Sequence record: LT598654.1
Length of the DNA: 64,000 bases
Reading direction: 5' to 3' (one strand)
Both the position numbers and the translations under genes were made by a program. Numbering within the stretch: position 1 is the first letter of the stretch; each line of letters begins with the position of its first letter. Positions 3,133 to 41,681 of the stretch are shown here, in pieces. The notes beneath the pieces are model-generated. The model was not told the DNA's origin. It saw nothing but the letters and a program-made list of their open reading frames with translations, and ran no database searches.

Positions 3133-3142
3133 GGAAAATAAC

Positions 3143-3628: not shown

Positions 3629-3645
3629 TTTAGTGTAAGGCGAAC

Positions 3646-5130: not shown

Positions 5131-5138
5131 GAAGGTAC

Positions 5139-8976: not shown

Positions 8977-9008
8977 TAATTTAAGGTTAAATAGAAGGAG
9001 AACTCCAA

Positions 9009-9221: not shown

Positions 9222-9224
9222 GCT

Positions 9225-20970: not shown

Positions 20971-21282
20971 TTGTTGTGTGATATTCGTTGTGGTATCGAT
21001 GCTATGAGAAAGAAGAAGCAGAAAAGGAAGGCTAAACTTAGCCTAAGGGAAAGTGAACGTAGACGCGCTCAGTCCAAGATAGATACTGAGGATATTGATG
21101 TGGGATGGTCAGAAGGTTCTTTTGATTTAAGTCCTACCGCTTTGGATATTCCGTCTTTAGATTTAGGGGCCTACTCTGACCCCTCTGATACCAAGACTAT
21201 GGTTGCACTATATCCACAGGATGATGTAATAAGTGCTGCCTTCCTATCTGCTAGATTGCGACGGCTAGGGCTAAAGCCGTAA
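20971..21282 (+). CDS. hypothetical protein (start possibly ATG at 21004)
   Basis: basic N-terminus; overlaps the convergent gene by 32 bp. Confidence 0.55.
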   Translation: MLCDIRCGIDAMRKKKQKRKAKLSLRESERRRAQSKIDTEDIDVGWSEGSFDLSPTALDIPSLDLGAYSDPSDTKTMVALYPQDDVISAAFLSARLRRLGLKP

Positions 21283-21835
21283 TAACTCGCCAAGTAAAAC
21301 TATCTACAGCGTTAACCTTCTGTTGGCGCTGTAGTTCTTCCCTGTAGTACTTAGAGAATTCCTCTATTCTTTTTGCTCGGTACGCTTCTAAGCGTAACAC
21401 CCTTAGCAACTGATTCCTTTCTTCTACGCTTAACTCCTGTACATTGTTCAACTGGCTAACCAGCTTTGCGTTCTCTGCACCTGCTTGGTACACATCACGT
21501 ATTTTGTATAGGGTAGGCGTATCAATTAACGTGTATAGCGTGTCTGATTCTGTGGCTGGAGGTAAACCTGATACGTTATCCTCTGCCTTACCAACAAACA
21601 CTTCTTCAAAATAGACTATACCGTCTTTTTCTACAACTCGTACAATCTTTGCATTCTTTACTTTCGATTCTAAGTCAGTTGGATAATCAAAAGGCTTAGT
21701 GTCTTTATGCTCAATCAATTCCAGGTCTAATAAATTAGTCACCTGTTCTATTTCAGCATTTGGTATTTCGGTACTGTCTAACATTGCGCACCCGGTCATC
21801 ATAATAGACACCGTGACCAGTAACCATCTTACCAC
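21251..21835 (-). CDS. outer-membrane lipoprotein, o-spanin candidate
   Basis: lipobox-like MMTG-C at residue 16, coiled coil, hydrophobic C-terminus; follows a TM plus coiled-coil gene. Confidence 0.65.
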   Translation of the reverse strand: MVRWLLVTVSIMMTGCAMLDSTEIPNAEIEQVTNLLDLELIEHKDTKPFDYPTDLESKVKNAKIVRVVEKDGIVYFEEVFVGKAEDNVSGLPPATESDTLYTLIDTPTLYKIRDVYQAGAENAKLVSQLNNVQELSVEERNQLLRVLRLEAYRAKRIEEFSKYYREELQRQQKVNAVDSFTWRVITALALAVAI

Positions 21836-22164
21836 TGTTTACCCTTGAACGCTTCAAGGTTTTCTAAGTCCGACTTTGATTCATCGTACTTAGGCTGTTC
21901 TTCTAATTTCTTTTCTGCAAGGATACGCTTGTTATGAAGCATTTCCTTTTCTTCTTCAAGCTTTTTTATGGCTTGTTGTTGATCAGCTAGCGCCTGTTTG
22001 GTCTGCTCGTCATCAATATCTCGGATTCCTTTTTCAAGTTCACCTACCCGACGACCTGCCTTACCTCCGGTCAGTGCAATAGCTACACCAGTTAAGATAA
22101 GACCTAGACCTGCTAATAGTGCCAGCCAATACTTTTTGTACCAGGGCGTGTTGTCCGTTGTCAT
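21829..22164 (-). CDS. i-spanin (Rz-like) candidate
   Basis: single N-terminal TM then charged coiled coil; overlaps the lipoprotein gene. Confidence 0.65.
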   Translation of the reverse strand: MTTDNTPWYKKYWLALLAGLGLILTGVAIALTGGKAGRRVGELEKGIRDIDDEQTKQALADQQQAIKKLEEEKEMLHNKRILAEKKLEEQPKYDESKSDLENLEAFKGKQW

Positions 22165-22487
22165 TTTTGAATTACCTTCTTAGACGCAGGAGCTTTATTG
22201 AACATACTGTCTACTACATAACCAATAGCAAAGAAAGTAAGCAAACTAGCTTCGGTATTAGTCATTAGTATACCAATGTATGAACTAATTGCAGCAGTAA
22301 CCGCTGTAAAGGTTTGCGATTTATGGGTTAACCAGTACGTGTCCCAATCCGCTTCGAATCGAATACACTTTTTAATATAGTGAACCACTACACCACATGC
22401 AGTTATCATAAAGCTAAGTAACAAATATCCCCATGAATAAATCAATAAGGGACCAAGTAAATCTGAAAGGTTTTTGATTTCTAACAT
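22161..22487 (-). CDS. holin candidate
   Basis: about three hydrophobic segments, basic C-tail; ATG at 22487 with GAGGAG SD. Confidence 0.55.
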   Translation of the reverse strand: MLEIKNLSDLLGPLLIYSWGYLLLSFMITACGVVVHYIKKCIRFEADWDTYWLTHKSQTFTAVTAAISSYIGILMTNTEASLLTFFAIGYVVDSMFNKAPASKKVIQK

Positions 22488-22542
22488 TGGTGTACTCCTC
22501 AGGTTGGTGCAGCCCAAATGAGCTGCAACTTAACCTAAACCT

Positions 22543-22832: not shown

Positions 22833-23411
22833 CTAGTCGTTTAGTATAGCAAGTTGTCCAGCTATAGAGATTGAAATCTCTTTGAGCGTAGCATCGCGTA
22901 GTTCAGGAGCCTTAACAGAAACAATCTCTCCCTTAGAAACCAACATAGGTTCGTTAGGAATAGTAGGACTGAACACGCCGACTTTAGCGCCAGCTGCGAA
23001 AGTAACTGTACCTAAGGTACGGTCTACATCACCGTTCGCATCAACAATACGGATGGTGAAAACTGTTTCGTCGGTTGCTGCATCAATAGCAACAGCCTGA
23101 CTTATTTCAAAATTAGAGTAAAACACGAAAGTACGAACAGCGATACTATTTGCAACTACAGCATCAGGCTTAGGACGACCTACGATTGTAACGCTAATAT
23201 CATAAGGGTTTCGTTCTTCATCTTCCTGCAAGACCCACATTGCTGCGTTGCTTGAGTAGATATAAATACCAGGAACGTACTCACCTTCTGGAGCAGTCAG
23301 TTGGTATTTTTGTGCATTAGTAGGAGCAACCGGGAACGTAGCTCCGCGGCTCGATACTAACTCACGGGAAATTTCACTGTCATCTAATAGGTCAACGCCG
23401 TCAATCTTCAT
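22833..23411 (-). CDS. virion fibre-associated protein
   Basis: beta-rich; RGATFPVAPT...YIYSS...W motif typical of fibre linkers. Confidence 0.6.
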   Translation of the reverse strand: MKIDGVDLLDDSEISRELVSSRGATFPVAPTNAQKYQLTAPEGEYVPGIYIYSSNAAMWVLQEDEERNPYDISVTIVGRPKPDAVVANSIAVRTFVFYSNFEISQAVAIDAATDETVFTIRIVDANGDVDRTLGTVTFAAGAKVGVFSPTIPNEPMLVSKGEIVSVKAPELRDATLKEISISIAGQLAILND

Positions 23412-23647
23412 TAGGCAACCCTCACTTTACCTGTTCGTGGAGAAGTGAATGTAATCTCCAACGTGTTATTATCAATGTTCACAACATCATAAGGAAGTAT
23501 CTTATGGCTGATTCCATCTATATCGATAGTAACGTCGGAAATAACTTCACGCCCTAAGTTATGAATAACAGTCCAAACAGAGGCAGCCACATCTTGAACG
23601 TGAGTATGACCAGAACGGATATTAAGTCTATTTCCGTTAATAGGCAT
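23411..23647 (-). CDS. small fibre-domain protein
   Basis: HVQDVAASVWTVIHNLG...LEITF...GKVRV repeat unit. Confidence 0.7.
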   Translation of the reverse strand: MPINGNRLNIRSGHTHVQDVAASVWTVIHNLGREVISDVTIDIDGISHKILPYDVVNIDNNTLEITFTSPRTGKVRVA

Positions 23648-23657
23648 AGTGCTCTCC

Positions 23658-24275
23658 TTAGATTGCTATAATCTTACCAGTGGTTGACGCAGAGAACGTA
23701 ACAACCGCCGAGTTTACATCAGTGTGTTGAACTGAGTCCGGCTGGATTTCGTAACCGTCAACGATAACTCGGATAAGAGGTTCGTACCCAAGCATGTGAT
23801 TCACGTTAACCGTAGTCTTATCCGTGAACTCCAGTTCGAAAGAAACGTCAGGTTTCGGAGTACCGTCGAAGTTACCGATGATTACGATAGCCTGTCCGAA
23901 TACAGGTACATCGTCGAAAGATACTGTAACCGTATTGTTATCGGTAGACTCAATATCTTTTGGAATGATTACTCGGTTGTTCTCGTCAAAACACTGTACG
24001 ATAACACTGGTGCTATTCATGTTGTGTTGAATTGTCCAGGTTACTGCTGCTTCATCCTGGCTATGGATATACGTGTTAAGCTCTTGCGTTAACGGAATCC
24101 AAACAGGGCTAGAAGCTAAGTCAAGACAAACCATAACACGCTTGTCTTTAAAAATAAATGAACCTACTTTGGGTTCAGTAGGGAAGCTGTCCATCATAGG
24201 CAGAGTAACATTACTCAAAAAGTTGCCTACTAAATCAAGCCCGCCCATGTGTTGAGTATTGCTATAATGCTTCAT
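23658..24275 (-). CDS. fibre protein with two copies of the WTIxHN repeat domain
   Basis: HSQDEAAVTWTIQHNMN... and VNVNHMLG... units. Confidence 0.7.
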   Translation of the reverse strand: MKHYSNTQHMGGLDLVGNFLSNVTLPMMDSFPTEPKVGSFIFKDKRVMVCLDLASSPVWIPLTQELNTYIHSQDEAAVTWTIQHNMNSTSVIVQCFDENNRVIIPKDIESTDNNTVTVSFDDVPVFGQAIVIIGNFDGTPKPDVSFELEFTDKTTVNVNHMLGYEPLIRVIVDGYEIQPDSVQHTDVNSAVVTFSASTTGKIIAI

Positions 24276-24340: not shown

Positions 24341-26035
24341 TTAAGCTTGAGGAGCAGCACCCATACAAACTGCACGGATAGCAAGACCTTGAGACAAGGT
24401 GATAGTTAACTGCGTGGTGCTATCGAAAGTGATAGAGTCAGGCATGATAACTTCATCGTTTGCATCCAGGACAGTTACGTTAACGTACTGTACGCCGATG
24501 TTGTGAGTTACTGTGTGAGAGGCATCAGCAGAACCAGTACCATCATACACGAAGTATGAATTGTCGATACGAGTTTGCGCAGCATCTACAGCAGACTGTA
24601 CAGTAGCAACAGCGTTGTCAGTGTATTGCTTGGTAGTCGCTTCCATCGCAGCAGTAGGATCAGAAGCTAATACCAGCGCACCTGTCATGGTGTCGCCGTC
24701 TACGTTGATGTAGCGGTTGTCCAGGTAAGTTTCGTCAACGTTAACACCAGTGCCGTCTACAACAACACCAGTACCAGCAGCAACGCTTAACGTAGTTCCG
24801 TCACCACCTTGCAGACCGTTACCCAGTGCAGTAGCGGCAACTTCTACTTCGGTGATACCAGAAGCAGCAACTTTAACACCAGTCGCGCTAGTGCTTAACG
24901 TAGTGCCGTCCAACAACAGGCTTAACTGTGCAGCAGTGTCAACAGAAGGAGTAGAACCGTCTACAGTCAGGAATAAACCTGAGGTAGCATACAGGTCGAT
25001 ACCAACTTCATCAGTAGGCAGTGATGCAACACCAGCACCCATGTTAACGTCGATTACGTTACCATTCTTAACAAGACCGTTACCAGCAGTCAGACCGTCC
25101 AGACCTGAGAACGCAGCCCATGCAGTACCGTTGTAACGCATGTAAGTAGAACCTGCAATGTCATACGCCAGTGTACCAGCAGGAGACAGAGCGGCATCAG
25201 AAACGTCGAAAGCAACAACGAATTCAGAACTTACGTACTCAACAATGTCACCGTCAGCAACGTCAGTGATAGTACCGAAGTTAGCATGAAGGTTAGCAAC
25301 GTCAGTCAGGATGTAGCGGTCACCTTCAGAAGGCGTACCTGGATCAAGAGTCGCATCAATCTGAGTAGCAAGTACATCGTCCTGCCAGTTCAGAGTAGAG
25401 ATAGCGTTGTCCAGGTCAACAAGACGAACAGCATCGTTTGCGTCAACTGGAGCACCTAAGCTCTTGACCAGGTTGCCGTCAAGAATCAGGTTACCCGTCA
25501 TTGAGTCACCAGCTTTGTTTACTGGTACATAACCCAGGTCAGCCTGCTTACCATCCAATTGAGTTTGGATAGGTGCAGTCACGCCAGATACGTAACCGAT
25601 TTCAGCAGCAGTCGTCGCAGATTCACCAACTTTACCACTTGCGTCAGAAACCAATGCAACAGATGCAGTGAGGTCTGAGTCAGTAATAGTAGTCGCGGCA
25701 CCAGTGATAGTGTCTTGCTTAGTAGCAAGTTCTGTATCCAGGTGTCCTTTAGAAACTGCAACACGGTCGCCAGAAGCAGCAGATTGGTCGTTAGAGTTAA
25801 GAACCAACTCACCAGTCATACCCGCATCAGAACCATCGCGTAACAGGTAGTTATCCAGGTCACCACCTTTCGCAAATGGATAGATAGTAGTACCGTCGTA
25901 AAACTTGTACGCTTCTTCGGTTGTGTTGAACCAGATTTGACCAACTCGTGGAGAGGCTGGGTCGGTCGCTAAATTCTCGGCAGCGAAGTTTGAGATAGTC
26001 GCTGAACCGAGTAGAGTAATGGAACCATATTTCAT
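24341..26035 (-). CDS. abundant fibre (hair/whisker) structural protein
   Basis: YVPVNKAGDSMTG and YINVDGDTMTG fibre motifs, DAVRLVDLD, WQDDV...GDRYI domain; visibly skewed codon usage; AGGAG SD. Confidence 0.7.
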   Translation of the reverse strand: MKYGSITLLGSATISNFAAENLATDPASPRVGQIWFNTTEEAYKFYDGTTIYPFAKGGDLDNYLLRDGSDAGMTGELVLNSNDQSAASGDRVAVSKGHLDTELATKQDTITGAATTITDSDLTASVALVSDASGKVGESATTAAEIGYVSGVTAPIQTQLDGKQADLGYVPVNKAGDSMTGNLILDGNLVKSLGAPVDANDAVRLVDLDNAISTLNWQDDVLATQIDATLDPGTPSEGDRYILTDVANLHANFGTITDVADGDIVEYVSSEFVVAFDVSDAALSPAGTLAYDIAGSTYMRYNGTAWAAFSGLDGLTAGNGLVKNGNVIDVNMGAGVASLPTDEVGIDLYATSGLFLTVDGSTPSVDTAAQLSLLLDGTTLSTSATGVKVAASGITEVEVAATALGNGLQGGDGTTLSVAAGTGVVVDGTGVNVDETYLDNRYINVDGDTMTGALVLASDPTAAMEATTKQYTDNAVATVQSAVDAAQTRIDNSYFVYDGTGSADASHTVTHNIGVQYVNVTVLDANDEVIMPDSITFDSTTQLTITLSQGLAIRAVCMGAAPQA

Positions 26036-26085: not shown

Positions 26086-26874
26086 TTACATAACACACGC
26101 GATGCGAATGCCGTGTAATTCTATTTCGGACATTAACTTATTGAACATTTGGAATGTTCCAAAGTCGTTATCCAGATGGGTTCTATTCCAATAAGACTTA
26201 ACAGTCCAGTAAGCCTTACGGTTTATAAGCCCAAATTCTTTATAGACTTGAATACGTTCATTCACGAGGACAACCTTAGTGTTGTCCCTATATAAATTAA
26301 CATCCACGAAGTCTAAACTGATAAAAGGATAGAAAGTTTCTGAATCTTTATCAGCTTGGTTAGAATACAAATAATCCATTTCGTACAATACATGAAGCAT
26401 ATGGCTAGAAAACTGCGCGGTAAATTTTACAACGTCCGCGAAGCAATTAGTCAAATCCTTACGCAACAATCTTTTATATTTGGTCAGTACGATAGGTTTG
26501 TATACTTTAAAGAGGCGTATAAATACCTCAGTAAAACCTCTATCGAACTGATCCTCGTTTTTGGTCATAGTGATAATGATGTTTTCCATATACTGAGAAA
26601 GTTCATCAATTTCTTCTGACACAATATCCCTGAGTTCTTCTTTACTCAGGTTTTGATTCTTCGACATTTTAATATGCTCTTCCAACTCTATGAGCCAAAA
26701 GCGCAATTGGTGTAACGTATACAGGAAAGTTTCTTTGCAGCTTACACTGAAACGGCTTTCCGATATAATAAGTTGGTTCAATAGAAACTCTCGGACTTTA
26801 TAAAAGTCAGTCCAGGCATTAGATGCAATAATCTGAAATTGAACGTTGTTTGGAACGAAATCGGTTTTAATCAT
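26086..26874 (-). CDS. hypothetical helical cytoplasmic protein
   Basis: 262 aa, AT-rich, abuts the upstream stop. Confidence 0.75.
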   Translation of the reverse strand: MIKTDFVPNNVQFQIIASNAWTDFYKVREFLLNQLIISESRFSVSCKETFLYTLHQLRFWLIELEEHIKMSKNQNLSKEELRDIVSEEIDELSQYMENIIITMTKNEDQFDRGFTEVFIRLFKVYKPIVLTKYKRLLRKDLTNCFADVVKFTAQFSSHMLHVLYEMDYLYSNQADKDSETFYPFISLDFVDVNLYRDNTKVVLVNERIQVYKEFGLINRKAYWTVKSYWNRTHLDNDFGTFQMFNKLMSEIELHGIRIACVM

Positions 26875-27594
26875 TTACTTCACGCCGAACACATTCATAT
26901 CGTCATCCCCTGTTTGGAGATTCCGTTGTGAAGCGTACAGCCCTCTAAGGTCTGAGATTCCTGATTCAATAGTTGCCAACGAAGAACTCAATTGACTGGT
27001 GTTGGTAGACTTGAGCGTTATCATTTCACGACACAAGGCTTCAACAGAACCTAGCCGCGATTCAACCTCTTTTGACTTGTCACCAAAGTCTTTAAACTGC
27101 TGTCTTATAACAGGTGCAAGTTCTTCATTAACACTCTTTATCAAGCCTTTATAGGCACTTTCCGTTTCCAATGAACTGTTTTTCAAGTCTTTAGACATGC
27201 TAGATAATGTATCTTCCAACTTATCGATTGCTTGCCTAATATCCAGTGACGTTTGAACTATTGTATCAATGCGTGTCAGCTTTTCTATTGTGCTTGCTTG
27301 GTCACCAACGTGTTGCTCAAGGTTTGCAATGGTTTCCTGCTGGCTAGCTAACGTTCCGATGTTGTCAGCTACCATAGCATCCAGCGCAGCCACTTTCTTT
27401 TCGTGCTTTTCCCTTAGTTCTTCAAGCTCCTGTTTGTGCTTTTCTCTAAGGTCACGATCATTGTTTTCTAATCCATCTACCCGTTGCAGCTTGGGTACAA
27501 TGAATATTTGGTACACTGCAAAGAAAACTGCTGCCAGTATAATGATAACACCGTAGCCTAAGTTTCCTGTGAGTAACTTTTCTATTATATCCAT
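26875..27594 (-). CDS. membrane-anchored long coiled-coil protein
   Basis: N-terminal TM (GVIIILAAVFFAVYQIFIV) then about 190 aa of heptads. Confidence 0.8.
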   Translation of the reverse strand: MDIIEKLLTGNLGYGVIIILAAVFFAVYQIFIVPKLQRVDGLENNDRDLREKHKQELEELREKHEKKVAALDAMVADNIGTLASQQETIANLEQHVGDQASTIEKLTRIDTIVQTSLDIRQAIDKLEDTLSSMSKDLKNSSLETESAYKGLIKSVNEELAPVIRQQFKDFGDKSKEVESRLGSVEALCREMITLKSTNTSQLSSSLATIESGISDLRGLYASQRNLQTGDDDMNVFGVK

Positions 27595-28001
27595 TACGGC
27601 GATTCTACCGGTGGGAGTTCTGTTTGACTATCATCTTCGGTCATCCTCATATTGAGGTATATGTTAGTACCGCAAAGCTTACTCGTAGGATTAAGTATAA
27701 GCCTGTGAGCGCCTTTTACTTTAGGGTCTTCCGAAATTACCAAGTGACTTATTGTTGGATTTAGTTCTGTACACTTAGACACTGAACCGTCAATCAAACA
27801 CATCGCACTTATACAGTAAATATCTTCCTGTCGTACAACACTTTCTTCTATCCCTTTATTAGAGAGCACTGTTTGGTTTATTGTTATTAGGAGTACTGCA
27901 ATGAGTGAACCCCATATCAACATGTTACCTACACGGTATCTCTTTTTTTGTTCTTCTGATAAGGCGTAGCCGCTACCAGTTTGTTGGTCGTTGTTAGCCA
28001 T
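27594..28001 (-). CDS. single-pass membrane protein with Cys-containing domain
   Basis: KKRYR then TM (MLIWGSLIAVLLITI); four Cys downstream. Confidence 0.75.
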   Translation of the reverse strand: MANNDQQTGSGYALSEEQKKRYRVGNMLIWGSLIAVLLITINQTVLSNKGIEESVVRQEDIYCISAMCLIDGSVSKCTELNPTISHLVISEDPKVKGAHRLILNPTSKLCGTNIYLNMRMTEDDSQTELPPVESP

Positions 28002-28930
28002 TATTCGACTATCACATCAATCTGCTCAAAGGCTGCTATGTAATGGTTTTTGTAACCTAACAAACGCATCTTACGTTTGTTGACCAGCAGTTTAAACGGA
28101 AGAGGATCCATATCAACTGGCTCCTTACCTCGAAGAAAAAATTCTTGAACAACGGGAGAATAATCTAACTCGAATATTAGGCACTCGTTGTTCTGACCCG
28201 GCATGAAATTAAAACCTACAGTCAGGTGTCGCGTATTCCTTCGACTGATAATGTCTTTGATTTCCTGCATCTTTACCACAGTACCGAATTCGTTATCGGT
28301 AAGTGCAGTCATATTATTTACTATAACACCTCGTTGGTTTTTATTAAACGAGATAAGTAAGTCTTCCAACTGCTGAACGGTAGATACTTCATAGAACTTA
28401 ACTGTGTTAGCCAAGCCCTGCAAATTCTTTTTGAGATTAAAACTATCTCTTGCTGTTAAACCTGTGGTATCATATAAAACATAGTACGCATCAGGAAACA
28501 GATTCATTTCACTAATAGTTTGAACAAGTTCACGCGCTAGGTTTGAGACTCGGAATACGTAATCTCGGTCAACACCTTGTACGCCAGTTCTATTTATAAA
28601 CCAAGTTCGTGATTTGTATTCGGGAGGTAAGAGGGTTAATAAATGGGAGGTAGCATCTACTTCGTCTACAATAATTGTATTAGGTTTTAGCTTTTGAATA
28701 TCTAATGCAACAGAGTACATAAGCTGTTCTGAACTAGTACCTCCGTCACCGAACCCTAGTGAAATATATAGTGAGGAGACTTCTGACTGTTTGAATCTGG
28801 CTAGCTCTGATGCAAGAGGGTGTCCGTAGTAGGTAGCTAACGGTCTACTAGATACGATAAACGTTTCATTACCTGCCACAGCCTGTGCTGAGATAATCAA
28901 AGACGTAACTAATGGCAGGAATTTTTTCAT
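28001..28930 (-). CDS. secreted periplasmic solute-binding-protein-like (ABC_sub_bind-like)
   Basis: signal peptide MKKFLPLVTSLIISAQAVA; IQKLKPNTIIVDEVDA, YYVLYDTT and terminal LLVNKRKMRLLG resemble ABC_sub_bind proteins. Confidence 0.6.
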   Translation of the reverse strand: MKKFLPLVTSLIISAQAVAGNETFIVSSRPLATYYGHPLASELARFKQSEVSSLYISLGFGDGGTSSEQLMYSVALDIQKLKPNTIIVDEVDATSHLLTLLPPEYKSRTWFINRTGVQGVDRDYVFRVSNLARELVQTISEMNLFPDAYYVLYDTTGLTARDSFNLKKNLQGLANTVKFYEVSTVQQLEDLLISFNKNQRGVIVNNMTALTDNEFGTVVKMQEIKDIISRRNTRHLTVGFNFMPGQNNECLIFELDYSPVVQEFFLRGKEPVDMDPLPFKLLVNKRKMRLLGYKNHYIAAFEQIDVIVE

Positions 28931-29772
28931 TATATCTTAACCAGTATAGCTTTACCTGTCACAGGACCTGCGAAAGTAATCAAGCTTGTGTTATTATCGC
29001 TGCCTTCTATAACAGCAGCACTTACAGGAAGAACCTGTTCACCGTTTTCATCATACACCTGGTACATGATGTTATTAGTAGAAAACCCGTGTGGTATAAC
29101 CCAAGAGTCTGAGGGTTCTTCTTCAACGTGCGTGAACGCAACAATGTTAGTGCTACCTCCACCGCCTAGTTCAAGTTCATCTAGTCGTGCGGCGTTGTTA
29201 GCAGCAAGGGCTTCAACTCTACCTAAACGTTTATAGATAGTAACAACAATGTTGTAGAAGCCTTGTGTTTGGTCATTCTTTTCGTCAATTACAAATGATT
29301 TAGGAACTAACTCTTTAGAATCAAACTCCTCACCCGTTGCAAGAGTACGTGCATTCAAAGGTCCTTCGAGAGTATCACCTGTTCTATCTACCGCATTAGC
29401 CAGAGAATTGCCTAGCTGTTCTTCGGTATAAAGAGGAACAGGTGTGTCCTCTACTGCGTAATACTGAGGTGGATCGAATATAGCAGCATAAGCATCAAGC
29501 TCTACCCAAGTATGGTTGAAACCACCCGATGACGCTTTTGATGACCTTTTAAATGCACCCTTATAGTCTTCACTATCTGGGTCTCCGTCTATCCAAGTTA
29601 CGTTTAGAGGTAGTACCAAATTGTACGGTTCAGAGTAAGATACAACTACCAAAGTCTCAACCGAGTTTGCGTTCTCTTTAACCGATAACGTTATCGGATA
29701 ATTATCCGCAAGCCCTCGCCCTTCAGCAATGCTAACACATCTGTCTGCAAAATCTTGTAGTTGGAGACCCAT
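28930..29772 (-). CDS. fibre protein with C-terminal repeat domain
   Basis: AVDRTGDTLEGPL motif; HVEEEPSDSWVIPHGF repeat unit. Confidence 0.7.
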   Translation of the reverse strand: MGLQLQDFADRCVSIAEGRGLADNYPITLSVKENANSVETLVVVSYSEPYNLVLPLNVTWIDGDPDSEDYKGAFKRSSKASSGGFNHTWVELDAYAAIFDPPQYYAVEDTPVPLYTEEQLGNSLANAVDRTGDTLEGPLNARTLATGEEFDSKELVPKSFVIDEKNDQTQGFYNIVVTIYKRLGRVEALAANNAARLDELELGGGGSTNIVAFTHVEEEPSDSWVIPHGFSTNNIMYQVYDENGEQVLPVSAAVIEGSDNNTSLITFAGPVTGKAILVKI

Positions 29773-30274: not shown

Positions 30275-31117
30275 TTAATCTCCTAATGCAATCCAAGTAA
30301 AGTCCCAAACGTCTGAAAGAGGGAGCGTAAACGTTCCCTTAACACCTATTGTAAACCCACCAATATCAGAGTCTACATCAACAAAGTCTCCGATTTCATA
30401 ATTCTGAGCTTGGAAACTATACGGGTCATTGAAGAAAATCATAATAGAGGTAACCCGATTCACAAACGGCTCAGAGAAAAGAACAGTGACTTCTTCTGTA
30501 CCTGTGTCCTGAATATAACGACCCCACTCAATCATTGCACCAGACTCAATCATTCGAATGTAAGGGCTGCGACCTTGAGTAGTGTTACCTTCATCATCAG
30601 TTTCAGTAAACGTGTGAGAACCTTCTTGGTTTCGGATACCAGCAAAGTACTCAGGTTCGTTTCCGTCTGTACCCGTAGCACCTGTTGCTCCGGTAGGACC
30701 AGTAGGGCCTGCATTTCCTATAGGACCTTGTATTCCACGCTCACCCGTAGCACCTGTCGCACCCTTAGGACCTCTGTCTCCTTTAGGTCCTGCACAACCT
30801 TGAATGCCCGTAGCACCATCACGACCGTTACGTCCCGGAGTTCCTGCTTTACCTTCCTTACCTCTAGCACCTTGAGGACCGCTAGGTAAGTTGAGTTCTG
30901 TAGGGAGTCCTGATACTCGAACAGTTCTGTTATTGATCGTTATTGACAACACGCCTGACTGTTTATCAAAGTCGGCGGTAAACGTATCTAATGCCTCAGT
31001 AGCACTAGTACCAGGAGATTGTGTTTCCAATCCCTGATCTGTTTGTTGAACGAAGTCACCTGACTCTGAGCCTTCTGTGGGCTGAATCATACTCAGGCTT
31101 GGTTTAGTTAAACTCAT
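30275..31117 (-). CDS. collagen-like fibre protein with C-terminal gp53-type domain
   Basis: 25 Gly-X-Y triplets; MIEWGR...VLFSEPF C-terminal fibre motif. Confidence 0.85.
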   Translation of the reverse strand: MSLTKPSLSMIQPTEGSESGDFVQQTDQGLETQSPGTSATEALDTFTADFDKQSGVLSITINNRTVRVSGLPTELNLPSGPQGARGKEGKAGTPGRNGRDGATGIQGCAGPKGDRGPKGATGATGERGIQGPIGNAGPTGPTGATGATGTDGNEPEYFAGIRNQEGSHTFTETDDEGNTTQGRSPYIRMIESGAMIEWGRYIQDTGTEEVTVLFSEPFVNRVTSIMIFFNDPYSFQAQNYEIGDFVDVDSDIGGFTIGVKGTFTLPLSDVWDFTWIALGD

Positions 31118-31848: not shown

Positions 31849-34410
31849 CTAGTCGTCAGGGCAGTTAAGTATAGGCTTGGCTTTATCTTTAGCCGACTGC
31901 GCATTTGCAGCTTGTACCGAAATAGTATTTGAAGGATCACCAGAACAGTAGGCGGTATACGTATTTAATGCTGCACTCTCAATTCGGTCATTAAGAGTGG
32001 TGGACGCACCTGTGTTATATTCTTCAAAACTTTCAAATGAACCTTCGCTTACAACGGCAGGTGCCGTATTGATAATATTCGTATAGCCTTCTTCTGCTGC
32101 GACACCGTTCGTTGACGTCCAAGTTGAAGAACCTGATATACGAACAACAGTTATCTTAAGGTCAGTAATGTGGCTAGGTACTGCACCGATCGTATCATTC
32201 CAAGAGTCACCTTCTGCTGCTGTTACCTCTGTAAGTGATATTGTGGTTGTTACCGCATCCCCTTCCAACGGATGGTCTGTCGGGTCGCTATCATAAGTAT
32301 AGAAAGTAGACGTACTAGAGTATCCGTCCGTAGCATCTGTAATATACAAGATACTAACCTTAGTCTGATTGGTCGGTACATTAGCAAGAACATGTGCAAC
32401 GTATGTAGTAAACATTGTTACAGATGCAAACTCACCACCTATGATATTAGCGGGGTCAATTGCATAATCATTTAGGATAGTTTGTATAGCAACATCACGA
32501 CTTGTTGTTACACCATTTGTAGTTACATCACTTGCGTTTGAGGTTGAACCACTCATATCACGGAATATATAGATAGTAAACTGCTCACCTTCACTAGCTA
32601 ATTCGACCGTCGTAACACTAGGTGAACTGTCTAAGATAGTACCGATACCTTCTGCTTTCGTAATACTTCCACGAGAAGGATTTGAGATAACAACTTTGAA
32701 TGTTTCGTCGTCTTCTTGAACGTCATCACATTTAACTGTTACCTGAACTGTCTTGGTTGTTTCACCCTCTGAGAATGTAACGGTTCCACTATTAGCCAAG
32801 TAGTCAGTACCTTCAGTTGCAGTTGCTCCCTGAGTTTCCCAATCAACGGTAACATCGCTACCTTCAATTGCTTCATCCGATGTAATGGTAAACGTTGCAG
32901 TTGTATCGGTATCGCTAGCACTGCACTCGTCTACATCCACATCACTGATAGAAAACCCTGTCTCATTACCTAGAGTCACGCAAGGCATTTCGAATGTGAG
33001 TACTGCATCGTCGCTATCACTAACACCAACCGTACCATAGTCGTTGTCTTCTACAGTAACAGATATATTGTAAGGCAACATGGCTCGGCTATCTACTTCC
33101 GCAACACTTCGACGTAGCGTAAACAAACCTACTCTACCGTTTTCTTCTGTACCTGTTAAAGACAGATTAGGGTGAGGAGCAGACCAAGTGTACGAGTAAT
33201 TACGCAGTTGCCAATCCGATGGGTCATTGAATTTAACTTCTACCCTAGCCGTTGCCTCATACGTGTCTCCTACGTTTAAGCATCTGTCTTCACACGGTAT
33301 TGTTTCATCTTCTACATCAGGAGGAGGCGGTAGAGGAGGATCAGGGTCTGGTTCAGCTTCTTCGTATTCCTGTACTGATTCTTTGTGGTAGATCTCCAGA
33401 GCTTTACCCCCGTTGACCCTGAACCACCAGAACGAACTCGATACAGTCCCACCTATTTCAGCCCAGTTATCACGACCACTACACGTAGCAAAACCCGCTG
33501 AACCACCTGCGTTATCTGCATACTGGATTAGAGTTCTGTCCAGATACATCTGACCCTGCATACATAATTCATCGTCACCGCGAGTATCGTCGGTAACAAA
33601 AATATACTCTTGGTCAAACGGTATCTTGGCTCTGGATATGTTTACTTTGCTTCCCTGAGGAGAACTATATTTAATCTTTTGCGTGAACGTATTGTAGTAA
33701 CCTAAGTTTTTGTTATACACCATAGGTCTTCGATAAATACGATACATTTTATGACCACCCGGACCTTTAAATTCAGTTCTAGGTGTAGTCGATAATCCGC
33801 TAAGTCTAAACCATTCATCCCATCCCTGGAAACCGCAGTACTTAACCATTCGACTATGGAGCTTGTTAGCGAATGAATAAGCCGATGCAAAGTTATAGAA
33901 GCTTACTGTAGCATAATATTTCTCGGTACTTGAACGGTCACATTTGACTACGAATAAGTATTCATAATCCTGTGCAAAATCACTCAGTACCAGAGTTCTA
34001 CCTTGTGATGTATTCCACAGTTCAAAAGTATGAGTGTTATCGTCGGGATGCAGGTTCCATACAGCAGGGTCTGGGTTTAGGTCGCGCTCCCAGATTTTCA
34101 ACATGTACGGATTACCTTTGGTTCTATAGAAATCAAATTTCTTATAACCATTGGAAGCTACCGTAGCCCTTGTTATTTGGTCGAGACCGTTAGACATAAA
34201 ACCGTCTGTAACATTAGAAGACGAGGGAGGCTGAATATCCATATCAGCAGGTATCTTGATAAACACGTTACCGATTTCGTCTTCCCTGTCGGTATCTACC
34301 ATGTGAATCATATATTCTTTGTTTGGTTGCCAGTCAAAAGGAACAGACCTAACCTGAGAGCTAGCGTTAGGTCTTGCCCAGACTTCAACCCATGGGTTGA
34401 TTATTGCCAT
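31849..34410 (-). CDS. adhesin-like virion protein with Calx-beta and vWA-like domains
   Basis: Calx-beta FSISDV...GTDY...GTVTF..GET.KTV.V....DD..E.DETF.V..SNP; DMSGS MIDAS motif and ILYITD. Confidence 0.8.
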   Translation of the reverse strand: MAIINPWVEVWARPNASSQVRSVPFDWQPNKEYMIHMVDTDREDEIGNVFIKIPADMDIQPPSSSNVTDGFMSNGLDQITRATVASNGYKKFDFYRTKGNPYMLKIWERDLNPDPAVWNLHPDDNTHTFELWNTSQGRTLVLSDFAQDYEYLFVVKCDRSSTEKYYATVSFYNFASAYSFANKLHSRMVKYCGFQGWDEWFRLSGLSTTPRTEFKGPGGHKMYRIYRRPMVYNKNLGYYNTFTQKIKYSSPQGSKVNISRAKIPFDQEYIFVTDDTRGDDELCMQGQMYLDRTLIQYADNAGGSAGFATCSGRDNWAEIGGTVSSSFWWFRVNGGKALEIYHKESVQEYEEAEPDPDPPLPPPPDVEDETIPCEDRCLNVGDTYEATARVEVKFNDPSDWQLRNYSYTWSAPHPNLSLTGTEENGRVGLFTLRRSVAEVDSRAMLPYNISVTVEDNDYGTVGVSDSDDAVLTFEMPCVTLGNETGFSISDVDVDECSASDTDTTATFTITSDEAIEGSDVTVDWETQGATATEGTDYLANSGTVTFSEGETTKTVQVTVKCDDVQEDDETFKVVISNPSRGSITKAEGIGTILDSSPSVTTVELASEGEQFTIYIFRDMSGSTSNASDVTTNGVTTSRDVAIQTILNDYAIDPANIIGGEFASVTMFTTYVAHVLANVPTNQTKVSILYITDATDGYSSTSTFYTYDSDPTDHPLEGDAVTTTISLTEVTAAEGDSWNDTIGAVPSHITDLKITVVRISGSSTWTSTNGVAAEEGYTNIINTAPAVVSEGSFESFEEYNTGASTTLNDRIESAALNTYTAYCSGDPSNTISVQAANAQSAKDKAKPILNCPDD

Positions 34411-34418
34411 ACAACTTC

Positions 34419-37400
34419 CTAGTGTTTTTGATCAACAGGGGCGTTATGAACAAGAACAGGATTCTTACCTGCGTAATAAGTATCGTTTTCTTCAACGTCA
34501 ATCACGATTACATCCAATCGATCTTTAACATGACGTAGAGTTCCAACGTGAACTTCATTACCGTTCATTCCAAGAAGCTTATCGCCCATCTTAATATCAC
34601 GCACATCCAACCAGTGCCACGTATCATCACGCTTAACCAGGATGTGGTGCTGTTGGGTAATCTTCAAGTCGCTATTGATAACCCAGTACTCTTTGTACCA
34701 GTTCATCTTAGCACTCTTAACCGTTGACGCAACATTAGAAGAACCTTCAAGTGATTGAGTTGTCCAATCTTCCCAGCCTTCTGTGTTTTCGTCAATCATA
34801 CCTGGAATTTGTCTTCCTATGATTTCATCACCAGGTCTTAGAAGTTCAGCAATCTTGGTAGTACCGTCAGCCATTAGAATAGGTGTATCTAAAGCTACAC
34901 ACCCACCGCCGCCTCCGCCAGAGTAAACATTTGCTTTCTGTTGGATAGTGACTGTAATTGGACTAGACTTCTGTACGTTACCTAAATCATCTTTAACAAA
35001 TATTTCTACTTCAAAGATAGCTGTTCCTGCCTGAGTTGTACTAGCAGTAGTCCACTCATAAGCAATAGACAGTCTATCATTGTTGGCATGGTATTCATCG
35101 TAAGGAACAAACGACCATGTATCTCCGTAACCATCTTCGTTTTCAATATAGAAAGCGCAATACGGAAGTATTAATATACGGTTAGCTGCATTAGGTATTG
35201 TTGCTGTGCTCCTTGTTACCGACCATTTGTATTCATAGGTACGCGCAGGATCGAATTCGAATTCTGCACAAACACCTGATACCATTGAATTAGCAGGACT
35301 CAACGTAGGTGAACTAACAGTCGTTTGAGTTTCTGTCATTGTCATATACGCAACAGAACCGGCGTCCTCAGTGTAAGAAACATCGGCATACTGGAGTTGT
35401 GTAGTACCTTCGTTAGCCCAACTGTAATTGATTGCGTTCGCATTTATTTTAAGCGCAACAATCGTTTCGGGATGCGAGTAAGTGGTAGAACTTACTAAAG
35501 CTGTACCTACCGAAGTAAGCGAATCTTTAACAATGTTCATATCACCGCTTGCACTAGTCGCAGTACCTTCCAGTATAGTACCTGTGCCTTCGCCTCTACC
35601 TATTACACCTGCACTTGGATTAGAGATAACAACCTTAAACGTTTCATTAGGGTCGCTTACTGTATCCGTGAAAGTGTTGACAGGAATCTCGGCACTACCT
35701 GCACCTGCTGGAATTGTCAGGGTTCCGCTTGTAGACTGGTAATCTACTTGGTCGCTACTACCACCTGAATTAGTTCCACCGACTGTGCTCAACGAGAACA
35801 AACTCATTAATGCCGCGTCTTCCTGTAGGTCAAGGATGTTGGTTACACTCATGCTGTCCCACAAGTAAGAGTTGTTTCCTGCATAGTCAATAATTGACTG
35901 AACAGAGATACCGTCGGTAGTACCCATACCAGTCGCAGTAGTGTTATAACCAATGTCAACGTCTTCACTGATTCCTAACGCATTAATAATACTCTTTGCG
36001 TTGGTATTCATTTTATAGAACAGGTCTGTATACGAACTCTTTGGACTGAAACCCGCAGTTGCAATAATAACTTTAGGGTCATTGGAGTTCTTAGCCATTC
36101 TGCTTAGTGCGACGGCAAAAGCACTAGACTGTCCTAAGTTGAACACTTTGTTTTTGTAGCTGTTCAGGTCAGATATATCACTGTTTTCATTAACGTGGTG
36201 ATTAATCAAACCGAATTGGTCTACAACAACAATGTCGTAGTCATTGAGAATATCTTTATGGCTCTTCCATGTTCCGCTATCAGGATCAATTGTGGTACGA
36301 CTGTAACCGTGAGGTCCGTAGTAGTTGATTACCTCAGTATCTACCGTAATTCCATAAATATTGGAAAGCGATTCTGTCATGTGACCCATTGCAGTAGTCA
36401 TATCATAAACAGCATCTTCTGTCACACGACCGCCGTAGTAATCGTCACGCTCAATATACGAATACTGCCAAATACGTTGGTGAGAAAGAACCAACATTTT
36501 AATCGAACTATTAAGAGTACCGAACCTGTCTTTCAAAAGGTTGGCAATCATTTTGTAGTAAGGCGGTAATTCGTTAAACGAGTTAACTGCTATATCGGTA
36601 TTAGAGATAACATCCTCTTGGTACACACCTGCAAAGTAGTTCATTTGCGTAGTACCAGAAGTACCGAACGGCCCGTACAGACGGTTAGGGTTTGCTTCTA
36701 GCAATAGTGTGTAGTTGTAGGTTTCATCTTTGTATACAGCACTAGTGATGATTCCTTCTTCACGATACAGAGGATACGGATTACCTACAGCAGGAACTGC
36801 GTCAGGACTAGACTGTGCTGTACCGTCCACTGTTGTATACTGAACCGTAATAGGATCAGATTGAGGTACGTTTAAGCTTACAACAAATCGTGCTTGCTGA
36901 CCTTCATACGCAAAAGCATCATTGATATTAATCTCAATATCAGGACACGCATCAATGGTTTGGTCATCAATCTGAATATCCAACAGAGGAATATAACAAC
37001 CTACCAAGTAGTTCCAGCTTGCATCGATAGGACAGTCAATACGTACACTAACATCAAGCAAGTCATCATAGTTGTCATTCGCCTCTAACCTGAACCACTG
37101 AATGTACTGAGTACCGGTTCCTTGTTTGGCAGCAACAACATTACCTTGCGCATCAATAACACTAGCAACATACTTGAAGTCACCGTACCCAACAACCTTA
37201 ACACTAGCAACACTGTCACCAATATCGTTCATTGTGTAATGGTCTTCTGTGCTGTAGTGACCTGCGCTGGTAATACCACTCGGAGGCTGCTCACAGTTCC
37301 AACGATTTTCTTTGTAGCCCTGCCTGTTTGCGTCATACAGCATGTATTCGTAGGACTCAATATCCGCACCATACTCACGTTGCTGAGCCATTACTTTAAC

Positions 37401-38546
37401 TACAATGTCAGGAACAGGATTTTCAAATCTCCACGGGTCAAAGACGATACTCATTAACCCATCTTCAAACTTGGTTTCTAAGGTAGACGCGATACGCTCA
37501 CCGCCGTGATAGACTTCAACCCAGTCACCGTTATCCCACGTTTCGTAGTTTAGATGCAGCACATAAGGTCCTGTGCTTGGGTCAAGTAATCCTACGTTGT
37601 GTACGTACTCCGTCCAGTATTGACCATTGTTCTGACGTTCACTGAAAGGATAAACTCTGGAATGTGTTGGTGCAGGAAATAAGCTAGTACCAATATACTC
37701 AGTTGTTCGTATTTGAGCCAAGTGTATATTGTTACCAGGTTCAAACACAGGCAAGTTCAAAACTTTCTTAGGCCCAATTACAGAATACATCCAGCGTTGC
37801 TTTTCTTCACTACGTATTCTGATCATCACACGGTCTTCACCGCTTCCGATTGCTGGGTCAAGAGTGAATTCTAACTTGCCTCTACCTGTTACACGACCAC
37901 ACGTACTGGCAATCAAGGCACCTAGATAGTAAACATCAACACTCATTCCGTACGTAGAATAAGAAGCGTAGCAGATTTCAAATATACCTGCTAAGTCTCC
38001 ACATTCGTAGATGGTTTCTGCGATAGCACTACCATTACTGAACGTATGAGTCCAACACATTGCTGGGTTCTCATAAGTACCGTGACCCAAGAAACTATTT
38101 GTTCCTGGATACGTATAGCTTTCTTTTGTGCCGTCGAGTCCTGGACGTTTGATAGCTTTACCCTCAAACGTTCCGAATGTTTTCTCAACACCGAAGCCTA
38201 CTTCACCTGCATCTGGTAAGTCGTAACCTGCAGGATAGCCTGTTAAGATATTGAACTCAGCACCGTCCGAGCCAACTCCGTTACCCGAGCCAGCTTCTTC
38301 TAAGGGAATACTACCACACGCAACACTTGCCAAGCTTGCTGCTGTACCGCAAGGGTTATCTAATATAGGGTCATAAGTACAGTCTACTGCTAACCACGTT
38401 GTGTTTCCGCTGTCCCGTATATGGGTTTGTTCTGGATAGAAACGAATCCAATTGCTGTTAAAACCGTCTCTGAAATAAAACTCAGAGTTACATTGGTCTA
38501 ACCAGCCATTGTCTAATGCGTTTCTTACTGTAAGTCTAGTACTCAT
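34419..38546 (-). CDS. large fibre/adhesin with split Calx-beta and C-terminal Hint domain
   Basis: 1375 aa; Calx-beta halves around an insert; GGGGG-CVALDTPILMADG...TQQH...VHN-A. Confidence 0.85.
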   Translation of the reverse strand: MSTRLTVRNALDNGWLDQCNSEFYFRDGFNSNWIRFYPEQTHIRDSGNTTWLAVDCTYDPILDNPCGTAASLASVACGSIPLEEAGSGNGVGSDGAEFNILTGYPAGYDLPDAGEVGFGVEKTFGTFEGKAIKRPGLDGTKESYTYPGTNSFLGHGTYENPAMCWTHTFSNGSAIAETIYECGDLAGIFEICYASYSTYGMSVDVYYLGALIASTCGRVTGRGKLEFTLDPAIGSGEDRVMIRIRSEEKQRWMYSVIGPKKVLNLPVFEPGNNIHLAQIRTTEYIGTSLFPAPTHSRVYPFSERQNNGQYWTEYVHNVGLLDPSTGPYVLHLNYETWDNGDWVEVYHGGERIASTLETKFEDGLMSIVFDPWRFENPVPDIVVKVMAQQREYGADIESYEYMLYDANRQGYKENRWNCEQPPSGITSAGHYSTEDHYTMNDIGDSVASVKVVGYGDFKYVASVIDAQGNVVAAKQGTGTQYIQWFRLEANDNYDDLLDVSVRIDCPIDASWNYLVGCYIPLLDIQIDDQTIDACPDIEININDAFAYEGQQARFVVSLNVPQSDPITVQYTTVDGTAQSSPDAVPAVGNPYPLYREEGIITSAVYKDETYNYTLLLEANPNRLYGPFGTSGTTQMNYFAGVYQEDVISNTDIAVNSFNELPPYYKMIANLLKDRFGTLNSSIKMLVLSHQRIWQYSYIERDDYYGGRVTEDAVYDMTTAMGHMTESLSNIYGITVDTEVINYYGPHGYSRTTIDPDSGTWKSHKDILNDYDIVVVDQFGLINHHVNENSDISDLNSYKNKVFNLGQSSAFAVALSRMAKNSNDPKVIIATAGFSPKSSYTDLFYKMNTNAKSIINALGISEDVDIGYNTTATGMGTTDGISVQSIIDYAGNNSYLWDSMSVTNILDLQEDAALMSLFSLSTVGGTNSGGSSDQVDYQSTSGTLTIPAGAGSAEIPVNTFTDTVSDPNETFKVVISNPSAGVIGRGEGTGTILEGTATSASGDMNIVKDSLTSVGTALVSSTTYSHPETIVALKINANAINYSWANEGTTQLQYADVSYTEDAGSVAYMTMTETQTTVSSPTLSPANSMVSGVCAEFEFDPARTYEYKWSVTRSTATIPNAANRILILPYCAFYIENEDGYGDTWSFVPYDEYHANNDRLSIAYEWTTASTTQAGTAIFEVEIFVKDDLGNVQKSSPITVTIQQKANVYSGGGGGGCVALDTPILMADGTTKIAELLRPGDEIIGRQIPGMIDENTEGWEDWTTQSLEGSSNVASTVKSAKMNWYKEYWVINSDLKITQQHHILVKRDDTWHWLDVRDIKMGDKLLGMNGNEVHVGTLRHVKDRLDVIVIDVEENDTYYAGKNPVLVHNAPVDQKH
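34443..34901 (-). other. Hint (BIL/intein-like) domain 1
   Basis: block A Cys1, block B TxxH, block F DVEENDTYYAG, terminal HN; +1 residue is Ala. Confidence 0.88.
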
Positions 38547-38554
38547 AATAGCCC

Positions 38555-39049
38555 TTAGACAGGTTTAATCCAAAGAGCGCCTGCTCCAACGGGGCCTGGA
38601 TCACTATCGCTGATATAGATAGCAACACGACCATCGAGTCCTGCTAAACCTCTTTCACCTTGAGGTCCGCTCGGTCCTTGTTCACCCTGTTTACCTTGTG
38701 GTCCACGTACACCGCGTTCGCCTTGAGCACCCTGCGGCCCTTGACAGCCCCGCTTACCCTGCAAGCCTTCTTCGCCGATAATACCATCGACACCTGCTGT
38801 ACCTGATACACCTTGAGGTCCTTCTGAACCTGAACCTACATCACTTTGAGTCATAAAGTTTTTGATGGTTAGTGTATCGTAGCCCGGTATCGAAAGAGTT
38901 AGTGTACCAGTTACGTTATCAAACGTTCCTGATATTTGAGAGGAATCGTTGCTGTCTGCTGTTACAGTTAAACCGGTTCCTGTATTCTCTACATCCCCAC
39001 TAACTGTACCTGCTTGAATCATTTTTAAACTAGGTTTAGTTAAGCTCAT
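38555..39049 (-). CDS. collagen-like fibre protein
   Basis: MSLTKPSL start shared with 30275-31117; about 23 Gly-X-Y triplets. Confidence 0.85.
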   Translation of the reverse strand: MSLTKPSLKMIQAGTVSGDVENTGTGLTVTADSNDSSQISGTFDNVTGTLTLSIPGYDTLTIKNFMTQSDVGSGSEGPQGVSGTAGVDGIIGEEGLQGKRGCQGPQGAQGERGVRGPQGKQGEQGPSGPQGERGLAGLDGRVAIYISDSDPGPVGAGALWIKPV

Positions 39050-39058
39050 ATCTATACC

Positions 39059-39697
39059 CTACGCAAATTGGTCTAAGTCGTCGTCATACTGACCGATAGC
39101 TGGATTGACCCATATCGCACCAGGTCCTGCTGACGCACCTGGATCAGTTTCAGAGATAATAATGTTGATAGTACCTGCAGGACCTTGATCTCCTTGCGGA
39201 CCAGTAGGACCTGTTTCTCCTGTAGGACCTGTTATTCCCACTTTACCTTGAGGACCTTGTGCTCCAGTAGGACCGCGCTCACCCATAGGGCCTTGTACAC
39301 CTTGAGGGCCGGGAGGACCAACTTGTCCGGGTCTTCCATCTTCACCTCTAGGTCCTTTGTCTCCGGTTGGTCCTACAGGTCCTGCACAACCTTCGGGACC
39401 TTCTTCGCCGTCCCTTCCATCACGACCGTCCTGACCGTCTAAGCCTGGTTCACCCTGAGGCCCTTGAGGTCCTTCTGGTATACTATCGAAAGTAGGGAAT
39501 CCTGTAATAGCAACATCCTGACCATTGGAGAATGTTAGTGTTAGGACTCCGCTTCCCTGATCATAAAAGCCAGCGGTTATCTCACTGGCTGTTGTTACTG
39601 TTTCGTCACTTGATTTAAGCTTGCCTGATTCGACAACAACGGCACTACCGTCGGCACCGCTTGCTTTAATCATCGACACTGGAATTCGTGTAAGCAT
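39059..39697 (-). CDS. collagen-like fibre protein
   Basis: about 34 Gly-X-Y triplets; IIISETDPG..GAIW tip motif. Confidence 0.85.
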   Translation of the reverse strand: MLTRIPVSMIKASGADGSAVVVESGKLKSSDETVTTASEITAGFYDQGSGVLTLTFSNGQDVAITGFPTFDSIPEGPQGPQGEPGLDGQDGRDGRDGEEGPEGCAGPVGPTGDKGPRGEDGRPGQVGPPGPQGVQGPMGERGPTGAQGPQGKVGITGPTGETGPTGPQGDQGPAGTINIIISETDPGASAGPGAIWVNPAIGQYDDDLDQFA

Positions 39698-41678: not shown

Positions 41679-41681
41679 AGA

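Follow-up and report, generated by a model that had tools for sequence, protein, structure and literature searches.

A conserved four-gene module of jumbo phages with a periplasmic-binding-fold protein, predicted to span the host inner membrane

Very few strictly lytic phages are known to read conditions outside the cytoplasm while they infect a cell. The classic one is the lysis inhibition of phage T4, the signal of which is still debated. T5 Llp, Cor of T1 and phi80 and gp15 of HK97, which are encoded beside receptor-binding genes, are single small proteins that mask a receptor or exclude superinfection. It is known that solute-binding proteins serve not only transporters but can also stimulate receptors of signal transduction (PMC10443332). 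Here we describe a module of four adjacent genes at positions 26086-28930 (minus strand) of a 64,000-nucleotide stretch of sequence record LT598654.1, the genome of phage NCTB; this whole stretch is called the window below. One of its products is a predicted exported protein with a periplasmic-binding fold, and we consider it quite probable that the four together are a phage-specific architecture that spans the host inner membrane.

NCTB is a jumbo phage of 257.9 kb that was assembled from surface water. It belongs to the 'Lupandier' group together with the Pseudomonas phages PaBG and Lu11 and with Dickeya and Erwinia jumbo phages (PMC7412058). The four open reading frames of the module are BN7874_122 to BN7874_125, all of which are annotated as hypothetical proteins in LT598654.1. 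They are transcribed in the order P1 (BN7874_125), P2, P3 and P4 (BN7874_122). An earlier interpretation of this DNA from its letters and translations (the sequence-only reading) had placed the four genes at the same coordinates with coupled junctions. It had described their products as a signal-peptide protein resembling ABC_sub_bind proteins, a single-pass membrane protein with a cysteine-containing domain, a membrane-anchored protein with about 190 residues of coiled coil and a soluble helical protein, and had located them in a virion operon and noted that no transporter ATPase or kinase is present. All of this description was borne out by the analysis below. The features of the module, all on the minus strand, are as follows.

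28001..28930, minus strand: P1, 309 amino acids, predicted exported type I periplasmic-binding-fold protein, ABC_sub_bind-like (open reading frame, model, Foldseek)
28871..28930, minus strand: predicted signal peptide of P1, residues 1-20, ending AVA-G (reading of the sequence)
27594..28001, minus strand: P2, 135 amino acids, single-pass membrane protein, predicted N-in/C-out (open reading frame, hydropathy, homologs in all module loci)
27864..27923, minus strand: transmembrane helix of P2, residues ~27-46 (Kyte-Doolittle)
27672..27827, minus strand: cysteine domain of P2, residues 59-110 (alignment of 7 homologs)
26875..27594, minus strand: P3, 239 amino acids, membrane-anchored helical or coiled-coil protein (open reading frame, alignment)
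27496..27558, minus strand: transmembrane helix of P3, residues ~13-33 (hydropathy)
26920..27489, minus strand: amphipathic helical or coiled-coil region of P3, residues ~36-225, about 190 residues (periodicity)
26086..26874, minus strand: P4, 262 amino acids, soluble five-helix bundle with a small alpha/beta domain (open reading frame, model)

The AlphaFold2 model of P1, built from a 42-sequence alignment of its family, has a predicted local distance difference test score (pLDDT) of 90.8 and a predicted template modeling score (pTM) of 0.87, and consists of two alpha/beta lobes in which strands and helices alternate. In a Foldseek search of the PDB, its best three matches were the ABC_sub_bind proteins 3lkv from V. 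cholerae, 6hnj/6hni (CD0873 of C. difficile) and 3lft from S. pneumoniae, found with a probability of 1.00, E ~2e-7 and TM-scores of 0.5-0.58 at a sequence identity of 11-15%. LuxP (ranks 9, 32 and 49), LacI-family cores and the amino-terminal domains of glutamate receptors came next. The search gave 370 matches at E<=0.001, and the best 50 of these 370 were almost all periplasmic-binding folds. At the level of the fold, the P1 model is therefore that of a type I periplasmic-binding protein of the ABC_sub_bind kind.

The sequence of NCTB P1 has no match in Pfam even at E<=1, and a P1 profile found nothing significant among PDB sequences. A profile run exhaustively against 1.84 billion representative proteins returned only 44 relatives, all of which lie in phage contexts where this was checked; the family is phage-restricted. 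Two of its most distant members pass the gathering score of PF04392 (ABC_sub_bind), which is 25.9 bits, with 28.7 bits for P0036 and 26.0 bits for P0051, so that membership of NCTB P1 in PF04392 by sequence is transitive only, by way of these distant members. The match between P0036 and CD0873 (E = 0.1) is suggestive only. Five polar residues, D154, N205, D212, N232 and H235, are conserved throughout the family, and D154 and N205 are placed in the second lobe at the end of a strand or just past it, where folds of this kind usually bind their ligands. These positions are compatible with a putative conserved binding site. L-Trp, L-Tyr or L-Phe is the ligand of those PF04392 proteins whose structures have been solved (PMC10443332).

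Signal-peptide-like N-termini were seen in 34 of the 42 members of the P1 family; the remaining 8 seem to be truncated gene calls. The orthologs of Erwinia phage Y3 and Yersinia phage fHe-Yen9-02 (Yen9-02) have a lipobox-like LGAC or LCAC in place of the AVA-G type of signal. P1 is predicted to be exported to the periplasm or the cell surface, and is probably soluble in NCTB and lipid-anchored in some relatives, such as those of Y3 and Yen9-02. We also note that the annotated start of the Y3 homolog, gp101, misses an upstream in-frame start that would add a lipobox-like signal and create an overlap of ~130 nucleotides with the preceding gene. The same long overlap is found in Yen9-02.

P2 contains a single hydrophobic helix at residues ~26-47, called with 19-residue Kyte-Doolittle windows above 1.6, and a basic KKRYR stretch ahead of it. 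Seven residues are invariant among its 7 aligned homologs: E59, C63, C68, C77, D92, R100 and C110. The simplest reading is that P2 is inserted N-in and carries a disulfide-bonded periplasmic mini-domain, probably with two disulfides. A P2 profile run against all PDB sequences found no relative at E<=10 and, in particular, no RI or T chain. Homologs of P2 are left unannotated in the records of Y3 (positions 8760-9044 of our locus L002) and Lu11 (positions 5214-5498 of our locus L016).

The membrane helix of P3 is followed directly by Pro34, which is invariant in 9 homologs. A hydrophobic periodicity of 3.5 residues, 2-5 times the background, extends over residues ~36-225. All 9 homologs have 0-1 Lys or Arg in the short N-terminal tail versus 2-5 in the 15 residues past the helix. 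Because of this bias, the positive-inside rule predicts that P3 is oriented N-out/C-in with its rod in the cytoplasm, which is the opposite of an i-spanin. The length of the rod varies among homologs from ~85 to ~200 residues, and the C-terminal end is a short motif of the hydrophobic-x-hydrophobic-basic type. The matches of P3 in Pfam, NCBIfam and PADLOC (SMC, JetC, ZorA and LmuB) were disregarded as generic coiled-coil noise. With all four proteins, these three collections and PHROG yielded no family that was informative.

The AlphaFold2 model of P4 (pLDDT 90.1, pTM 0.89) shows five helices of ~28 residues each and a small alpha/beta domain, and hydropathy analysis of P4 found no membrane segment. 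The model has no significant structural neighbor in the PDB (best E 0.08) and retrieves only its own family from BFVD; the sequence has no match in Pfam, NCBIfam, PADLOC or PDB sequences. In 185,579 bacterial genomes P4 occurs at a single locus, a Y3-like phage contig mis-binned in a metagenome-assembled genome. By these searches P4 is a phage-restricted orphan family. It has an acidic patch formed by E165, D167, D188 and D191, whereas the C-terminal tail of P3 is basic and conserved. The PHROG label 'ABC transporter' (phrog_19088) was rejected, because neither Pfam nor NCBIfam detects an ABC domain in P4 and the PDB holds no relative of it. The single genome match is JAVWLC010000123.1, a 7-kb contig of a 'Raoultibacter sp.' assembly. 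It carries a collagen-like fiber gene and the four-gene module and is a fragment of a Y3-like jumbo phage, almost certainly mis-binned into an actinobacterial assembly.

To follow the four families together, we ran their hidden Markov models on all open reading frames of every fetched locus. The arrangement P1-P2-P3-P4, with its order and orientation conserved, was found in NCTB, two IMG/VR relatives, Y3, Yen9-02, PaBG (as gp253-256), Lu11 and eight more metagenomic contigs, that is in about 14 distinct genomes or contigs after near-duplicate contigs were merged. The co-occurrence is far beyond chance: every P1-bearing locus of adequate length has the four families in this order, except that the fourth gene differs in the most distant branch (L010 and L011). 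In the loci read, P1 was never found without P2 and P3 directly downstream, save on contigs that end too early, and P2 and P3 still follow even the most distant P1 relatives (loci L010, L011 and L012). P3 is the sole component present in every variant, i.e. in the four-gene loci, in phages that have only P3 and P4, and in the L011 branch with its other fourth gene. Vibrio phage pv27 and its relatives carry P3-P4 alone, among small genes and away from tail genes, and Ralstonia phage RsoM2USA has P4 followed by P3 in a non-structural neighborhood without P1-P2. Hence, as P3 occurs in every variant and the P3-P4 pair stands alone in other phages, P3-P4 look like a free-standing pair to which P1-P2 are an add-on periplasmic input that is never found alone.

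Two of these loci showed peculiarities of their own. The AT-rich L010 (Logan contig SRR29699997_52177) has in-frame stops in the module genes under translation table 11, and the database protein differs from the table-11 translation; both hint at the reassignment of a stop codon in this phage. In pv27 (our locus L006, ~3100-9800) the P3-P4 pair lies within a run of genes for proteins of ~100 residues, several of which have similar ...EFI or ...MFI ends. These may constitute a paralogous small-gene family.

The published virion proteome of PaBG (14 gel bands) lacks the module proteins gp253-256 and contains the adjacent gp257, as well as gp261 and gp263. The product of 24341-26035 in NCTB is the ortholog of gp257. 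The absence of gp253-256 agrees with the export signal of P1 and the membrane anchors of P2 and P3, and weakly supports a non-virion nature of the module proteins.

Three junctions have the form TAATG, with a one-nucleotide overlap of stop and start: that between the upstream fiber-like gene and P1, and those between P1 and P2 and between P2 and P3. At the P3/P4 junction, TAAATG, stop and start abut directly. Promoter-like sites did not exceed their frequency in shuffled sequence, a terminator scan gave none that was convincing within the module, and terminator-like hairpins appear near 21030-21070, after the last gene of the operon. The module is therefore part of a long late structural operon, to which its translation is coupled. 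The genes that flank it include none for an ATPase, a permease or a kinase; they encode fiber-like or virion proteins according to Pfam, PHROG and the record annotation.

Several observations concern the neighbors themselves. Four fiber-like proteins around the module (28930-29772, 24341-26035, 23658-24275 and 23411-23647) share a C-terminal domain of ~60 residues (phrog_21918/28944). The product of 28930-29772 is grouped in phrog_24148, 'HNH endonuclease'. Its N-terminus matches tail proteins and Pfam finds no nuclease domain in it; the label looks like a propagated mis-annotation. A collagen-repeat fiber protein (Pfam Collagen, E = 1e-14) is encoded upstream of the module at 30275-31117, and several very large tail proteins at ~34400-41700 are annotated 'intein domain' in the NCTB record.

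The same late operon ends in three genes (21251-22517, minus strand) that resemble a lysis cassette, as judged from sequence features alone:

22161-22517, minus strand: holin-like multi-helix protein with a basic tail (sequence features)
21829-22164, minus strand: i-spanin-like protein with an N-in helix and a coiled coil (sequence features)
21251-21835, minus strand: lipobox (MMTG-C) protein with a C-terminal anchor, phrog_23384 'lipoprotein' (sequence features, PHROG)

The combination of an N-terminal lipobox and a C-terminal anchor in the product of 21251-21835 is an architecture like that of a unimolecular spanin. No endolysin was identified near this cassette. The equivalent operon of Yen9-02 ends in a protein that is also annotated 'lipoprotein', which is the only lysis-gene candidate in the two fifths of the Yen9-02 annotation that were covered (1-50,000 and 200,001-248,678). 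The holin-like gene, 4 kb downstream of the module, is a plausible regulatory target.

In the mechanism that we propose, the four proteins would form a non-virion inner-membrane complex that is made late, alongside the tail fibers. P1 would be a periplasmic binding protein of the 'Venus-flytrap' type, and P2, anchored N-in, would show its small and probably two-disulfide domain to the same compartment. P3 would be anchored N-out in the manner of ZipA and EzrA and extend its long helical rod into the cytoplasm, where the helical bundle of P4 would be its partner. Upon binding of a periplasmic small molecule or an envelope component by P1, P2 would pass the signal to P3 within the membrane, and P3-P4 would alter a late cytoplasmic or membrane event. 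The likeliest target, on the pattern of lysis inhibition in T4, would be the moment at which the cell lyses. We favor the relay of a periplasmic signal across the membrane by a non-virion complex late in infection over its rivals, but advance it only tentatively, as something possible rather than probable. Lysis timing as its specific output, an argument by analogy, is doubtful. We likewise regard as rather unlikely the fullest version of the proposal, a split transmembrane receptor with which a widespread group of jumbo myoviruses would retime lysis late in infection when something in the periplasm, for instance a metabolite, a quorum signal or material from neighboring lysed or superinfecting events, is sensed by the diverged binding protein, and which would amount to a ligand-gated analog of T4 lysis inhibition made of unrelated parts. 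The sequence-only reading had proposed a phage-built sensor of a periplasmic ligand serving lysis timing or inhibition, superinfection sensing or assembly anchoring. Its architectural parts stand, whereas for the sensing and for each of these roles we can go no further than inference.

A number of findings weigh against such a relay. No known signaling output domain (HisKA/HATPase kinase, MCP or GGDEF/EAL) was found in P2, P3 or P4 with Pfam and NCBIfam, and searches of Pfam, NCBIfam, PADLOC and the PDB, together with the structure search for P4, linked none of these three proteins to one of known function. P1 might serve as a scaffold that binds no ligand. The four invariant cysteines of P2 could bind zinc instead of forming disulfides, the topology of P2 and P3 is derived from the positive-inside rule and these cysteines, and the contacts among the four proteins are putative. 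The fourth gene of L010 and L011 shows no detectable homology to P4; that of L011 encodes a protein of similar size, which the P4 profile matches with an hhalign probability of 0.7%. The PaBG virion data are weak evidence of absence, since they comprise only 14 abundant bands that minor components could escape. Finally, in all P1-bearing lineages, including L011, the module stays among tail or fiber genes, a position that suits a role in assembly or in receptor-related functions at least as well.

An assembly role would make the module a morphogenetic device rather than a sensor: P3-P4 would hold tail, baseplate or fiber ('hair') intermediates at the inner membrane, and P1-P2 would fix this anchor from the periplasm. 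In NCTB, Y3, Yen9-02, PaBG and Lu11 the module does have fiber-like genes on one side and the gene of a proven virion tail protein on the other, and in the distant L011 it lies between fiber genes and the tube and sheath genes. Furthermore, the predicted N-out anchor and cytoplasmic rod of P3 have the topology of known cytoplasmic tethers, and the rod varies in length as a spacer might. However, gene order within the Lupandier group may be mere inheritance, the P3-P4 pair of pv27 and RsoM2USA is far from tail genes, and it is not obvious what an exported binding-fold protein or a periplasmic cysteine domain would do for virion assembly in the cytoplasm. We hold a tether to be unlikely. The same neighborhood of fiber genes would fit envelope proteins that block a receptor or DNA entry and thus shield the infected cell, or keep progeny from being lost on debris. 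P1 is predicted to be periplasmic and is probably lipoprotein-anchored in Y3 and Yen9-02, and P2 resembles a small envelope protein of the disulfide type. Against this, known exclusion proteins are single and small and need no cytoplasmic partners, a late operon with coupling to a fiber gene is late for exclusion, and the P3-P4 core occurs without any periplasmic part. As, in addition, no similarity to known exclusion families was found in Pfam, PHROG, PADLOC or NCBIfam, superinfection exclusion or receptor masking appears improbable.

The remaining explanations are much harder to reconcile with the data. P1 could be an auxiliary metabolic gene product that docks on a host ABC importer and boosts uptake, as cyanophage PstS does, with P2-P4 as unrelated neighbors. 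Its ABC_sub_bind-like fold, the amino acids bound by the solved members of PF04392 and the lack of a phage transporter would all fit. Yet the extreme divergence of P1 from cellular binding proteins, as seen in its failure to match Pfam and its few relatives, the constant presence of P2 and P3 behind it and its late, translationally coupled position make this very unlikely. We assign a similarly slight chance to the possibility that the module is itself lysis machinery, with P2 as a T-like single-pass holin, P3 as an i-spanin and P1 and P4 as accessory proteins. P2 and P3 are indeed small bitopic proteins expected to be made late, and the T4 holin gene, too, comes after the fiber genes. However, there is no lipoprotein o-spanin frame embedded in or beside P3, the charge bias of P3 predicts a cytoplasmic and not a periplasmic rod, no endolysin is adjacent to the module, and P2 has no similarity to solved RI or T proteins. 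A separate and more canonical holin/spanin-like cassette also ends the same operon at 21251-22517. For the lack of an o-spanin partner, the predicted topology and this better candidate, we rejected the assignment of P2 and P3 as holin and spanin. Lastly, the idea that all four are plain structural proteins of the tail or fiber apparatus draws on their position inside a virion operon. Of this we saw no sign: the signal peptides of the P1 family, the conserved membrane helices of P2 and P3, the PaBG gel bands and the occurrence of P3-P4 outside structural regions in other phages all speak against it, and we consider it extremely improbable.

The module is a concrete candidate for periplasmic sensing by jumbo phages that infect plant pathogens, Pseudomonas and marine bacteria. 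As a tether or an exclusion device it would still comprise three new protein families (P2, P3 and P4) and put the binding-protein fold to a new use. Its description would also correct two spreading database labels, which name P4 an 'ABC transporter' and the neighboring fiber-like protein an 'HNH endonuclease'.

Comparison with described systems places the module near several of them and within none. The ABC_sub_bind (PF04392) proteins have the two-lobe type I fold and, as predicted for P1, the export in common with it and are its best structural matches. Unlike them, P1 is constantly followed by P2 and P3, is restricted to phages and has no cognate permease or ATPase. Without genes for these two components, and with no ABC domain in P4, the module is not an ABC importer. 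Sensors of the LuxP-LuxQ type resemble it in that a periplasmic flytrap protein, LuxP being among the structural matches of P1, stands beside single-pass membrane and cytoplasmic helical parts. They differ in their output, as the module has no HAMP, kinase, MCP or GGDEF domain. Moreover, unlike LuxP-LuxQ, the module divides the membrane crossing between two bitopic proteins that are unrelated and are predicted to face opposite ways, and all of its parts are encoded by the phage.

The parallel with RI, the T holin and RIII of T4 is one of working principle only. Both sets would include a periplasmic protein, a bitopic protein with a disulfide-bearing periplasmic domain and a cytoplasmic partner, all made late. 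However, P1 is a 35-kDa binding-fold protein and not a small antiholin, and the holin-like gene is a separate one 4 kb downstream. No homology to RI, T or RIII was found, either with the P2 profile against PDB sequences at E<=10 or with PHROG, where all matches were to families of unknown function. Llp, Cor and gp15 are, like the module proteins, phage proteins located in the envelope and encoded in tail or fiber clusters, and some P1 orthologs are lipoprotein-like; the module differs from them in having four proteins, some of them cytoplasmic, and no homology. Like ZipA and EzrA, P3 is predicted to have a short N-terminal tail on the outside, then a single membrane helix and a long helical domain in the cytoplasm. 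It has no sequence relationship to either protein, its topology is a predicted one and its partner is an orphan phage protein. A two-component spanin is expected to be N-in and bitopic, with a lipoprotein gene adjacent to or embedded in its own; P3, which is predicted from its charge bias to be N-out and has no lipobox frame within or next to it, is not of this kind.

The literature search found no description of the module and no link between jumbo phages and periplasmic binding proteins, and the statement of the sequence-only reading that no described system has this layout stands for the literature searched. In summary, P1 taken by itself can be classed with a known fold, as a member that has diverged greatly. 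The four genes together lack what defines an ABC importer, a binding-protein-dependent sensor, the T4 lysis-inhibition system or a spanin. With a function that is proposed only, they make up a real and conserved system of a new kind, one that is undescribed in the literature searched.

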